From contig JAIVFI010000027.1 of NCBI GenBank assembly GCA_025558095.1, forward strand, positions 496,001-560,000: a stretch of DNA of 64,000 nt. Reading direction: 5' to 3'. Positions 3,145-8,341 of the stretch are shown here, piece by piece. The notes under the pieces are model-generated. The model worked only from the letters and a program-made list of their open reading frames with translations, was not told where the DNA came from and made no database searches. The stretch's first letter is position 1, and every line of letters begins with the position of its first letter. This DNA comes from Hyaloraphidium curvatum SAG 235-1 (Eukaryota > Fungi > Monoblepharomycota). Made by a program: the position numbers and the translations under genes.

Positions 3145-3434
3145 GGCTAGGCCTGATCCCGCGGGGGCGCGTAACCGTGGGCGGTTTTCTTCGGGACGCA
3201 AGGGATCAAGGGGGACGCATCGGCACCTGCGGACTTGCCGGCGGAGACCCGGATTCGCCGTTGATCTAAGAAGAAGTGAATGTGAATCTATCTTAGGCAA
3301 CGGCATTCTCTATCGTCCTGGGGATTCGCCAGGACAGTGATTCGTATGGCAGAAGTTCGTCAAAAGGACGTTCTCGACGTGTCTCAACCAGAGTGAGTGA
3401 GTGCAGTCTCTCGCAAGCGCCAACAGTACCGGCG

Positions 3435-4325
3435 ATGTCGGTCCGGAATCCCGACGCTCACCGGGCCGGCACGGCCGTTCGGGCTCTCTACGAGCCCCAC
3501 TACGCGTTCCCCGCGTGGACGCTCGAGCCCGCCGTGTGGAACGACGCCGACTTTGCCGCGACGCGCGTGCTCCACCACGCGTCGGACGCCCTCCCCGACG
3601 TGGTGCGCGTGGCGACGGAGCGCGAGCCGTGCAACATCGGGATGGACCGACTTTACGACGAGGACGAGATGGCGGCGGCGTTCGGGTGGGCGCGCGGTGC
3701 GTACGGCGACTCGCTGCCGGGGAGGCCGATGCCCAACATCGCCGTGCTGTGCCGCGCGACGGTCCAGCTGAGGAGCAGGAGGGTGCGCGCCTGGGTTATC
3801 AGCCTCGTCGGGGTCGCGCACGATTCGCCAGAGCAACCCGACTCCCAGATCTTCACGACGCCGGAAGAGGTGGTGGCGGCCTACAAAAGAATGTGGAGCT
3901 TGTGCGCCGCTGCCGCCGTGATGCTGAAGAGGGAGCAAGGCGTTCAAACCCTGCAAGTGTACAACGTCGGCGGCGGTGCGTTCGCGGGCTCCCTGTTTGA
4001 TGACTTTGTCCGCGAATGCTTCGAGCCCGCGTTCCTGCCGCTCCTCCCCGAGCTGGAAAAAGCAGGGGTTACTGTCGCCGGTTACGATTTCCAGCAGCAC
4101 AGGTTCACCGGAGGGTGGATACCCAACGTGCTCGAGGCGCTCGACGACGTCACCCTGGAACGCACGCTGTGGGTCAATGCCTGGGATCCCTGGTCCCTGA
4201 TCGGCAATGGCAACGCCGGGGACGGCTCGCTGGATGGGTACTGGGGTCGATGCTCGAACCTCGCTATCTTGGGCTGGCCGTGCACCAATCCGCACGTGCG
4301 TTACGTGGCCGTTGACGACTCGTAA
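3435..4325 (+). CDS. Uncharacterised intronless protein (296 aa), possibly macrodomain-like
   Basis: Clean ORF with coding-like composition and motifs VYNVGGGAFAG and WVNAWDPWSLIGNGNAGDGSLDGYWGR. Function is inferred only. Confidence 0.75.
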   Translation: MSVRNPDAHRAGTAVRALYEPHYAFPAWTLEPAVWNDADFAATRVLHHASDALPDVVRVATEREPCNIGMDRLYDEDEMAAAFGWARGAYGDSLPGRPMPNIAVLCRATVQLRSRRVRAWVISLVGVAHDSPEQPDSQIFTTPEEVVAAYKRMWSLCAAAAVMLKREQGVQTLQVYNVGGGAFAGSLFDDFVRECFEPAFLPLLPELEKAGVTVAGYDFQQHRFTGGWIPNVLEALDDVTLERTLWVNAWDPWSLIGNGNAGDGSLDGYWGRCSNLAILGWPCTNPHVRYVAVDDS

Positions 4326-4676: not shown

Positions 4677-5722
4677 TCACATCTCGCCCGCAGCCATCTT
4701 GAGCACCGCTCTGGCCACGCTCAAGCTCCCGCTAGAGAACCATCCTGCAGCCTTCATCCGTGCTTCCAGGTCCTTCGCGTCCTTCTCGGTGAACTTATCT
4801 CCCAGCATGCGGACGCAGAAGGCGGTGCAGACCTCGGCGTATGGCGATCCACAGGGAATCTGCATCGGATAGGCACGATCAGATCTTTCGATCTCAACCA
4901 CGATCCCCTGGATGCCTACCTCGGGATGCCATTGCACCGTAAGACAGCGAATCTTATTATCAGGTCCGCGCAGACAGGCTGCCTGGTGCTCAGTGAGCGA
5001 GGAAGTCCCGAGCGGCTCGAAACCTGGAGCGAGTTCGAGAACAGCATCCTGTGAACACCAGTGCATCAATCACGGGTAAGATCGCTGCCAATCCAGACGT
5101 ACCCGATGGAATTGGATGGCGTCCAGGTGCTCCTGCGGCGCCCCGACCTGCGCAAAGATCGCCCGTCCTGCCGGCGTCGGATCCACCCTGATCAGGCCCA
5201 CTTCCCAGCCTTTCGGGTTCTCCTTGACCGCGCCACCGAGTGCATGGTGCACGAGCTGGCTGTAAGACACGGAATCCACCTCAGCTAACGACAGTGTCTA
5301 GTCGGCGTGCTTCAACCCACTGTCCGAAACAGACCGCGATCAGGGGGACGCCGCCCTCGCAATACGCCCCGTGCCACGCCTTGATGAGCTCCTCCTCCTT
5401 CTCCATCCACTCCTTGCCCTCGGCGAGCATCGATGTGCTGCCCGTTAGCAGCACAGCGTCGAACGACGCTAGCTCCGTTGGGCTGGGCAGCTCCCCCGCG
5501 AACCCGCAGTAGGTCACCACCTCGACGGCGCATCCCTCCTCCTCCGCCGCTTTCGAAAGGAGCCGGCCGAACACCTGGGTCGGCGTCAGCGCCGTCCGCA
5601 GGTCAGGAGATGGAGCCCACCTCGTCGAGCTCGAGCGCTTCGGTGCCGGCCCAGGTGGGCGATGAATGGTCCTCGTTCTCCACCACCGCTATCCGGCGGG
5701 GGCAGGCACCCGATACGGTCAT
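4677..5722 (-). CDS. Class I glutamine amidotransferase-like protein (multi-exon)
   Basis: Spliced motifs FDAVLLTGS, LIAVCFGH/QLVHHALGG, KGWEVG, FH/QDAV and VQWHPE give the Cys-His-Glu triad. There are 3-4 short GT-AG introns. Confidence 0.9.
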
Positions 5723-5923
5723 GTTCGCGGCTGGGAAGCAGGGCAGCGCGCGTGGAGCGGGGATTGGGACAGGCGGAGGAACGAGCGGTGGAGCGCGACA
5801 ATCGGCACAGCCCGAAGTTGTTGCGGACACTCCGGTGCCGTTGCGAGATGGACCAACAGATCGCGCAGGATTCCCTAGATGGTTACCATCGTGTTGGCCA
5901 GCGGCGATTTGCCGCGCGCCGGT

Positions 5924-6002
5924 ACGTTCCTCGGTCCGATATCAGCCTCCGTGCCCGCGGCAGCGCCGCTTTCCGGCCCGTGGCTTCATAGTCGCAGAAC
6001 GC
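5924..6002 (-). promoter_or_regulatory. SECIS element (eukaryotic type II) in the 3' UTR of the SelU-like gene
   Basis: Minus strand reads GCGTTCT-gcgact-ATGAA-GCCACGGGCC-ggAAA-GCGGC-gct-GCCGC-g-GGCACGGAGGC-TGAT-atcggaccga-GGAACGT. This gives helix I, an AUGA/GA core, an ~10-bp helix II, an unpaired AAA and a 5-bp apical ministem. Confidence 0.85.
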
Positions 6003-6052
6003 GCCTCGCAGCGCGACTCCTCATCCGCCCGCCTGCTCATACCAGTATGTCC

Positions 6053-6832
6053 TCATGAGGACGCCGCAATCCTCTGCAGCGTCGGCAGCACCTCGGCCTC
6101 GTAGGGCGCAAAGTCGCCGAAGATCTTCTCGAGGTACTGGTACTCGATCTTCTCGGGCTTGTTGCCGACGATGACTGTGCCGCCCATGACGTAGCCCTCG
6201 CCGATCATGTTGCCCTCGACGGCCTTAAAGGCCGCCTCGAGGTGGGCCTTGACGCCCTCGTCCTCGAGGTCCTCCTTGGTGCCCCGGTGGATCTCGCCGC
6301 CGCCGACGAAGCGATAGAAGATCTTGTCCTGGTCGAGGAAGAGCTCCAGGGGCCTTCGCGAGGACGGCAAGCGTCGATTAACACGCGAGTCCGTGTGGGG
6401 CAAGCCGCGGAGGGGGGACCCACCAGTACTTCTCCTTGAACTCCTCGGCACCGAGCTCCTCCTTAAGCACGGCGACGAGCCGGAAACCGAGTTTCTCGAT
6501 CTCCTCCTTATGGGAGGCCTGTCCGACGGAGTCAAGATAAGGCCCTGGACTGTCCCCCGGGCGGCCGCCCCGACACCCACGACCATTTTGGCCTCCTCCC
6601 GACAGAACCATCAGCCTGAATATCCGTGACGACGAAGAGCGGGCGAGAACCGGGATTGGCACGGCGCGCCGCGCCGCAGGTCCGGAAACCGCTCACCGGG
6701 TCGGCGAATCACGAGGACGTATGCCGGCTTGTCCTTCCAGAGCTCCTTCGCGGGGAACTCGACCTTGTCATCGCGGCCGAAGAAGTCAACCAGCGGCGAG
6801 GCGCCGAGCTCCTCGACCGTGATGGGCGCCAT
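6053..6832 (-). CDS. SELENOU: Selenoprotein U / peroxiredoxin-like 2 (FAM213, AhpC-TSA_2 family), 188 aa, Sec47 encoded by TGA at 6611-6613
   Basis: Exons 6697-6832, 6581-6615, 6424-6518 and 6053-6353 give MAPITVEELG...LWKDKPAYVLVIRRPG-U-WFCREEAKMV...LELFLDQDKIFY...GNMIGEGYVMGGTVIVG...EKIFGDFAP. Family similarity continues on both sides of the TGA, and a SECIS lies downstream. Confidence 0.9.
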
Positions 6833-7010
6833 GTTTGTGGCGGCCAGGGCAGCGGGCCGGTTCCCTTGCCGCGCGCTCCCTCAACTCCAAACGTCTCCCA
6901 GCCTCCACTTCGCGTATATAGCGGTCCTGGATCAAGGACTGCTCCTTTTTTGGTTCCTAGACTCTGGTTCTTGAGGAAAAGGACCCTCGTCCCATCTTTT
7001 CCTCCCCAAA

Positions 7011-8341
7011 ATGGCTCCAAACGACCTCGTCGTCCCCTACTCGACCCTCCTCCCCTTCGTCGGCTCCATCTTCCGCTCCGCCGGCTGCTCCGAAGCCGAG
7101 AGCGAGCGCATCTCGCGGTACCTCATCTCGGCCAACCTCACCGGCCACGACTCGCACGGCATCATCCGCGTGCCGCGCTACGTCTCGAGCCTCAAGATGG
7201 GCATGGTGCAGAAGGACCAGCAGCTCACGGTGATCAGCGAGGGCCCGTCGCACGCGATGGTCAGCGGGAACTACGGGTTCGGGCAGACGGTGGCGCCGCT
7301 GGCGGTGGAGATGGGGATCAAAAAGGCCAAGGAGACGGGGATGGCGATCGTCGGGCTCAGGGAGGCGGGGCACGTGGGAAGGGTGGGGGACTGGGGCGAG
7401 ATGGCGGCCGAGCAGGGGCTGGTCAGCATCCATTTTGTCAACGTCGGCAAGGCCGAGGTGGGTTGCTTCGGTGCGGGGCCCCAAAGCGAGCCTGATCACT
7501 TTCATTCTTGGCGGTTCGTCCACCACGCTGGTGATCACCCCATTCAGCTCGTCGCGCCATTTGGGGGCACCTCCAAGCGCTTCTCCACAAACCCCTTCTG
7601 CGTTTGCGTGCCGCAGCCCGACGGGCGTCCGCCGCTGCTGCTGGACTACGCGACGTCGACCGTGGCCGAGGGCAAGATCCTTGTGGCCAGCAACGGTGGC
7701 AAGCCGGTTCCTGCGACGTCCATGATCACCAAGGACGGCCAGTACTCTGGCGACCCCGAGGTGCTCTGTGGGTAATCCGGCTGCTGTGTGTTGGATGTTG
7801 CTGACAAACACTCCAGACGGACCCCTCACGCCGGGCGGCCCGCGCAACCCCATGAACGGCACGGGCAGCATGACCGCCTTTGGCGAGCACAAGGGCTCCG
7901 CGCTGGCCTTCATGTGCGACGTCCTCGCGGGGTGCTTCATCGGCTCGCCGACCTCGGGGCCCGTGCCGCCGCCGTCGACCTTTGGTGGGCTCTCCCGATT
8001 GCCGGCGCACGGCGATCCCTGACCCCCTTTCGGCGACAGACAAGGCCGCGCCGTACCGCAGCTCATACTGCAACGGCATGCTCTCGATCTACGTCGACCC
8101 CGCGCGGATCGGCGCGCCGGCCGAGTTCGCGGCCAAGGCGGCCGATTTCGCGGAATACGTGCGCGCCTCCGAGCCCGCGGCGCCGTCGGTCAACCCCTCG
8201 CAACGGGTGCTGTGCCCCGGGGATGCCGAAGCCGAGACGAGAGCAAAGAGGATGAAGGAGGGGGTGCCGGTGCCCAAGGAGGTTTGGGATGGGCTGGTGA
8301 GCGCGGCGAAAGAGGTGGGAGCGGAGGTGCCGAGCCTTTGA
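7011..8341 (+). CDS. Malate/L-lactate dehydrogenase (Ldh_2, YbiC/HcxB-like), 4 exons
   Basis: Motifs ANLTGHDSHGIIRVPRY, GNYGFGQ, GHVGRVG, APFGG..RFSTNPF, LDYATS, FGEHKGSAL and VLCPGD, with three GT-AG introns. Confidence 0.92.

Follow-up and report, generated by a model that had tools for sequence, protein, structure and literature searches.

A transcribed SELENOU/PRXL2-family gene of Hyaloraphidium curvatum whose in-frame UGA very probably encodes selenocysteine

Selenoprotein U in early-branching fungi

SelenoU was listed in 2018 among the selenoproteins of early-branching fungi by Mariotti et al., who found it missing from Gonapodya prolifera, the only monoblepharid of their survey, could identify a SECIS for no more than 5 of 16 fungal genes and reported no Sec-to-Cys orthologs in fungi (bioRxiv 10.1101/314781). 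Amses et al. 2022 describe selenocysteine (Sec) in 11 early-diverging fungal genomes, in a genome set that includes Hyaloraphidium (PMC9457484). As for the wider family, PRXL2A, PRXL2C and PRXL2B correspond to SELENOU1, 2 and 3, respectively, and the Sec forms of vertebrates all belong to the SELENOU1 branch (bioRxiv 10.1101/2025.05.29.656587). In the human PGF synthase (PGFS), the peroxide is placed by two arginines that precede the CxxC motif and is attacked by the first Cys, while the flexible loop 108-124 passes close to the site (PMC12938796).

We analysed a window of 64,000 nucleotides of the H. curvatum genome (contig JAIVFI010000027.1, positions 496,001 to 560,000). We conclude, with a probability of about 0.94, that it contains a transcribed four-exon selenoprotein gene of the SELENOU/PRXL2 family in which a UGA is read as Sec, as had been predicted from the sequence alone; the TGA is carried by an RNA contig and conserved in relatives, and tRNA-Sec and the Sec machinery are encoded in the genome. 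The accompanying statement that Sec use has been reported in only a few early-branching fungi gave Gonapodya prolifera as its example, to which one correction applies: SelenoU was missing there in the 2018 survey. The novelty of the gene is modest, as Sec-SelenoU of other early fungi has been known since 2018. In the literature searched, whose coverage was incomplete, we found no paper on H. curvatum selenoproteins, nor any direct experimental proof of Sec insertion in a fungus. We also noted PRXL2A proteins of the Cys form in Diversispora, Tieghemiomyces, Basidiobolus and Dissophora, which may or may not be orthologs in a tree that is poorly resolved.

Gene structure, transcript and public annotation

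The gene lies on the minus strand and its four exons total 567 nt, i.e. 188 codons and a stop (Table 1). The sole internal stop of the spliced frame is the TGA at 6613-6611, within RRPG-TGA-WFC-REEA. The length of intron 1 is a multiple of three, and its retention also leads to a frame that ends at this TGA (73-aa ORF); the alternative AG acceptors near intron 1, used with the same donor, all shift the frame. The position of this intron is common to two environmental relatives (L041 and L043) and to the paralog on C23. A Logan contig from run X1 (2175 nt), aligned to 5875-7100, skips exactly 70, 62 and 81 nt, with 0 base differences and no other gaps, so that the mature transcript includes both the TGA and the complete 3' hairpin. 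Run X1 had been taken as RNA by guess, and it is the spliced joints of the contig that show RNA; this transcript basis is one assembled contig from one run rather than raw reads, and contigs drop rare forms. The DNA run X2 has no coverage of the TGA. The predicted architecture, three introns and a 188-aa frame interrupted by the TGA only, was thus recovered with GT-AG sites throughout, the list of open reading frames does split the gene into three pieces as claimed, and the contig carries TGA rather than TGC or TGT at the critical codon, which is not spliced out.

Table 1. Features of the SELENOU/PRXL2-family gene, in window coordinates
Feature	Position	Strand	Remarks
Exon 1, coding part	6697..6832	-	ATG at 6832; 45 codons + 1 nt; ends ...VIRRP-G; Cys homologues align by tblastn up to RRPG; RNA contig
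Intron 1	6616..6696	-	81 nt, GT-AG, phase 1; skipped by RNA contig (81)
Exon 2	6581..6615	-	35 nt; codes G-U-W-F-C-R-E-E-A-K-M-V, the UxxC active site; RNA contig
In-frame TGA, putative Sec (residue 47)	6611..6613	-	first Cys of the family CxxC; seen in RNA contig
Intron 2	6519..6580	-	62 nt, GT-AG; skipped by RNA contig (62)
Exon 3	6424..6518	-	95 nt; PF13911 positions 4-32, E 0.012; RNA contig
Intron 3	6354..6423	-	70 nt, GT-AG; skipped by RNA contig (70)
Exon 4, coding part	6053..6353	-	clade-specific acidic loop and GNxxGEG...GG motif; PF13911 E 6.8e-6; RNA contig
Terminal TGA, presumed true stop	6053..6055	-	TAG or TAA at the matching place in related genes
3' UTR, at least 178 nt	5875..6052	-	RNA contig reaches 5875, a contig end and no mapped poly(A) site
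SECIS core, type-II-like	5941..5989	-	AUGA / helix II / AAA / apical mini-stem / UGAU; homologous hairpin in L032, L033, L043
SECIS with outer helix I, limits approximate	5924..6002	-	helix I pairs kept with compensatory changes in 4 sequences

The prediction that standard annotation would mis-splice the gene proved real. The public H. curvatum hypothetical protein KAI9012422.1 (176 aa) is 100% identical to exon 4 over residues 78-176, reads KPAYVL-EAKMV and is devoid of the 12 active-site residues VIRRPG-U-WFCRE, having presumably been spliced from a GT at 6712 to an AG at 6596, which takes the UGA site away. Were this deposited model right, the product would be a protein without redox site, and the longer intron does have GT-AG at both ends and does stay in frame. 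However, the RNA contig is joined across 6616-6696 and has no alternative joint, a minor isoform being possible since contigs drop rare forms, and the 12 deleted residues are the most conserved motif of the family; we consider it highly improbable that the public model is the correct one. The structure given here thus corrects a public gene model that is without its catalytic site.

Contamination was ruled out by the 608-kb contig, its uniform GC, the spliceosomal introns and the presence of an NCBI H. curvatum protein on the same contig. Around the gene, an Ldh_2-family dehydrogenase (PF02615; window 7011-8341, plus strand) is divergent, its start being 178 bp from that of the SelU gene, and the X1 contig extends about 1160 nt beyond 7100 into it, through either overlapping 5' ends or an assembly merge. 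In the environmental record L032, an Ldh_2 gene is found 2.3 kb from the SelU relative, in an arrangement different from that of the window. The next gene on the same strand (4677-5574, minus) is glutamine-amidotransferase-like by eye (CFG and QWHPE motifs), with no Pfam match on the exon pieces tried, and an intronless 310-aa ORF (3393-4325, plus) has no Pfam match.

Conservation of the UGA, the 3' hairpin and the selenocysteine machinery

Four environmental relatives, L032 (SRR26194948), L033/L034 (one organism in two metagenome records), L041 and L043 (SRR23967301), all read G-TGA-W followed by FCREEA. TGA-TGG is thus retained at roughly 43-68% identity to the window gene. The intron precedes the TGA in L041 and L043, as in the window, and follows TGA-TG in L032 and L033; conservation of the TGA despite different intron positions argues that it is no chance mutation. 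The window gene groups with these relatives (SH-aLRT 94) in a tree that was made quickly and left unfinished, some of its rows being partial and none a vertebrate reference. Other observations came from the same material. The metagenome scan with exon 4 returned one false positive, a DnaJ/Sec63-like gene. In both L033 (1-140) and L034 (1-70), the start of a bacterial-type semialdehyde dehydrogenase (argC-like) is fused in frame to a SelU exon, which is probably a misassembly. Finally, L045:1-541 (ERR1712023) is a distant SelU with RRPG-TGA-PL-C, on an unspliced or cDNA contig.

The hairpin, 64 nt 3' of the stop, comprises an AUGA at 5989, 13 nt, AAA, a 5-bp apical stem and a UGAU ending at 5941. 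A scan with a SECISearch-like pattern, written after the candidate hairpin had been seen and requiring an apical AA, gave one match in 128 kb (both strands of the window), namely this hairpin, for 0.73 matches per shuffled window; the chance of a match in a 500-nt 3' stretch on the right strand is about 0.003. The pattern also recovers 7 of the 10 other SECIS candidates of the genome. Rfam SECIS_1 (RF00031, threshold 35 bits) gave no match to the hairpin up to E 10, either in a scan of the 3' UTR or in a genome-wide search, and this model misses or under-scores most of the other SECIS candidates of the genome as well. The folding z-score of the hairpin, whose helix II is imperfect and bulged, is about 0, i.e. 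no better than shuffles, free-energy z-scores being uninformative for it and for most other SECIS of the genome. A MAFFT alignment of the unrelated SECIS of the genome was poor.

The comparison with relatives was more informative. A homologous 3' hairpin with AUGA and NGAN is found in L032 (3668-3725), L033 (922-980) and L043 (948-1003), with 95.5% of cells paired and 4 pairs changed on both sides; only 3-7 of 500 shuffles paired as highly, and slid controls reached 30-50%. This covariation in 3-4 sequences, from which the structure itself was derived, is supportive of a conserved element without amounting to proof. The three relatives carry a GGAN quartet and, where the apical AAA would be, UAGA or UACA, and the AA-requiring pattern missed the hairpins of L032 and L033. 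The AhpC SECIS of Gonapodya is likewise reported to be without apical adenines (bioRxiv 10.1101/314781). For fungal SECIS elements, distances of 40-420 nt from the stop have been reported, a range that includes the one found here. The predicted 3' UTR SECIS thus held up as the sole pattern match in the window, inside the transcript and as a conserved hairpin, in spite of its being missed by Rfam.

Three further SelU paralogs with a TGA at the same position are present in the genome, which brings the Sec-SelU paralogs to four: C20 (L038, U-LL-C), C23 (L036, U-LM-C) and C43 (L040, U-FL-C). Each is followed by an AUGA...AAA hairpin, that of C23 having a long apical insert, and the public model of C43 (KAI9002172.1, 113 aa) starts downstream of the TGA. 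All this bears on the possibility of a transcribed pseudogene or a sequencing error, in which the TGA would be a mutated Cys codon and the hairpin a product of chance. Such a change from TGC or TGT is a single one and the hairpin escapes Rfam, but the TGA is found in the RNA contig, in four divergent relatives and in three paralogs, the remainder of the reading frame is undamaged and the genome encodes the Sec machinery. Conservation largely refutes a pseudogene or an error, and we give this explanation very little credence.

The original prediction called for a complete Sec machinery in the genome. We found a tRNA-Sec with a UCA anticodon (G000:C14:445030; 78.2 bits, for a cut-off of 47), SepSecS on C8 (E 7e-58), SPS on C2 (over cut-off, with its own in-frame TGA in GLKG-U-GCK), eEFSec on C1 (fourth domain over cut-off) and SBP2 on C31 (an L7Ae exon, best PDB match human SBP2, E 1.4e-5). 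PSTK was the one weak match: the candidate, on C2, has a P-loop and falls below the cut-off of TIGR03575 (E 6e-4), with a PDB match at E 0.76 and a weak Pfam match. It contains DDNMYYSSMR, which we take to be the PSTK motif, and the gene is probably PSTK. By the general eukaryotic pathway, tRNA-Sec would be charged via PSTK, SPS and SepSecS; SBP2 would bind the 3' UTR SECIS, and eEFSec would deliver Sec-tRNA to UGA codon 47. Termination would still occur at the final UGA, which is separated from the SECIS core by only 64 nt. Read-through of this terminal UGA was judged unlikely: the resulting tail of 36 unrelated residues would run across the SECIS, and the relatives have TAG or TAA at this point. 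The next in-frame UGA past the terminal stop is the 3' quartet of the SECIS itself.

UGA can be read through without Sec, as in the insect SPS1-UGA, and a shortage of selenium can lead to Cys in the place of Sec. One might thus suppose that the internal UGA is read as a standard residue (Cys, Trp or Arg), through near-cognate decoding independent of the SECIS or in competition with Sec under low selenium, and the three relatives whose SECIS is without apical AA would fit such decoding. Against it speak the genes of the Sec machinery (PSTK among them as a probable one), the AUGA/GA quartet of the SECIS and the position of the UGA at the catalytic Cys, and we hold this to be unlikely, if somewhat less so than a pseudogene or a wrong splice model. 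As UGA is also the ordinary stop of the window gene, there is no general UGA reassignment. Insertion of Sec thus remains by far the preferred reading.

A fifth SelU/PRXL2 paralog (L005:2495-1500, minus strand; G000:C30:528662 downward) has C-CL-C at the active site, together with the best Rfam SECIS of the genome (36.2 bits), about 45 nt after its TAG stop. Its only in-frame start is ATG-GTC-TGA, with the UGA at codon 3, about 55 codons before the motif and near the start distance of the paralogs; the window itself contains 4 cases of ATG-NNN-TGA with 50 open codons behind it, so that the pattern alone is weak. The metagenome scan found no relative of this paralog. Judging from its sequence, it may have an N-terminal Sec, be a pseudogene with a leftover SECIS or be a gene with an undetected upstream exon. 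L046:1526 (plus strand; G000:C27:206025), with an ATG-CTC-TGA start, is a second M-x-UGA gene in the genome. Six other loci (L006, L007, L008, L009, L011 and L027) are selenoprotein candidates with an in-frame TGA and a SECIS, presumably, from their motifs, deiodinase-like, SelK, SelW-like, SelH, SPS and AhpC/PRXL2C-like, the last of which carries UxxC. The other Rfam SECIS matches of the genome lie behind the deiodinase-like, SelK, SelW-like and SelH candidates. The genome holds at least 10 selenoprotein candidates. One may speculate, very tentatively, that SelU has expanded and diversified in this lineage, with four UxxC paralogs, an acidic-loop clade acting on a new substrate and SECIS elements without apical AA, and also with an N-terminal, non-catalytic UGA-Sec (C30 and C27) serving for example as a selenium-dependent translation gate. 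The C30 CxxC paralog with its UGA codon 3 and SECIS is the better lead.

Predicted enzyme and comparison with known systems

Profile and homology searches were run exon by exon, or with the proteins that these searches returned. Exon 3 matches one part of PF13911 (AhpC-TSA_2) and exon 4 the part next to it, with 16.4 and 26.9 bits respectively, each alone under the 27-bit cut-off, and PF13911 figures in the precomputed annotation of the public 176-aa protein. There is homology on both sides of the UGA, exons 1, 3 and 4 aligning to the same homologues. Exon 4 alone gave no match in a homologous-protein search. The gene has the RRxG-(U/C)xxC-RxEA and GNxxGxG...GG motifs of the SELENOU/PRXL2 family, and its named neighbours, from Diversispora, Tieghemiomyces, Basidiobolus, Synchytrium and Micromonas, are automatically labelled Peroxiredoxin-like 2A. 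The alignment search gave mainly plant PRXL2A, with no vertebrate references among the matches listed. The best PDB match is the human prostamide/PGF synthase PRXL2B (9USA / 9US9, E 4e-7). At the position of the TGA, 25 of 25 homologues with an intact motif have Cys, in line with the prediction of a PRXL2/FAM213-type protein recoded at the Sec site of SelU; many other homologues begin just after the active-site motif, as expected for models cut at the UGA or at an intron. Membership in the SELENOU/PRXL2 family is secure, and the subfamily is likely SELENOU1, going by the automatic names of the neighbours; the quick tree, of sequences other than vertebrate ones, is poorly resolved. Selenoprotein L has two Sec in UxxU. 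It was rejected as an assignment, since the second position is TGT, for Cys, and the public protein has no NCBIfam match; homologues score about 50 bits against NF040769, the cut-off of which is 120 bits.

The 188-aa product would be a thioredoxin-fold enzyme with RRPG-UxxC. This arrangement keeps the PGFS layout, which designates Sec47 as the candidate nucleophile and Cys50 as the candidate resolving residue. By analogy with PGFS/PRXL2B, the two arginines would position a peroxide or disulfide for attack by the Sec47 selenolate, Cys50 would then resolve Sec47 to a selenenylsulfide and the thioredoxin/NADPH system would re-reduce it. The same analogy makes an organic or lipid peroxide the most likely substrate, albeit by a limited preference; a protein disulfide would be the alternative.

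The gene represents an RNA-supported Sec-SelU with a canonical-looking SECIS in a lineage where the 2018 survey found no SelenoU. H. curvatum is cultured and possesses the Sec machinery, which makes it a practical organism in which to demonstrate Sec insertion directly for the first time in any fungus. It further offers Sec machinery of fungal origin for the engineering of yeast, as suggested in the 2018 survey, which called missing the kind of comparative SECIS data now available from the environmental relatives (bioRxiv 10.1101/314781).

Compared with the eukaryotic type II SECIS (RF00031), the element has the same AUGA, 13 nt, AAA, apical mini-stem, NGAN and outer helix, but its helix II is bulged, and three relatives have UACA or UAGA for the apical AAA. 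With vertebrate SELENOU1 / PRXL2A (FAM213A), the protein shares the UxxC or CxxC after RRPG. With human PRXL2B (SELENOU3), it shares the Arg-Arg before CxxC and would share the thioredoxin fold and peroxide reduction (PMC12938796), whereas the human enzyme has Cys instead of Sec and a narrow prostaglandin substrate. The flexible 108-124 loop of PRXL2B, near the active site, aligns with the acidic segment of the window gene: in the clade of this gene the loop before GNxxGEG has a net charge between -2 and -4, the range in four Cys homologues being 0 to +7, which hints, as a matter of sequence, at a substrate or partner different from that of ordinary PRXL2A. The fungal SelenoU of the 2018 survey has in common with the present gene the family, the position of the Sec-UGA, the eukaryotic machinery and mis-annotation by standard pipelines; H. 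curvatum differs in that its Sec-SelU paralogs number four, all of them with an AUGA...AAA hairpin downstream.
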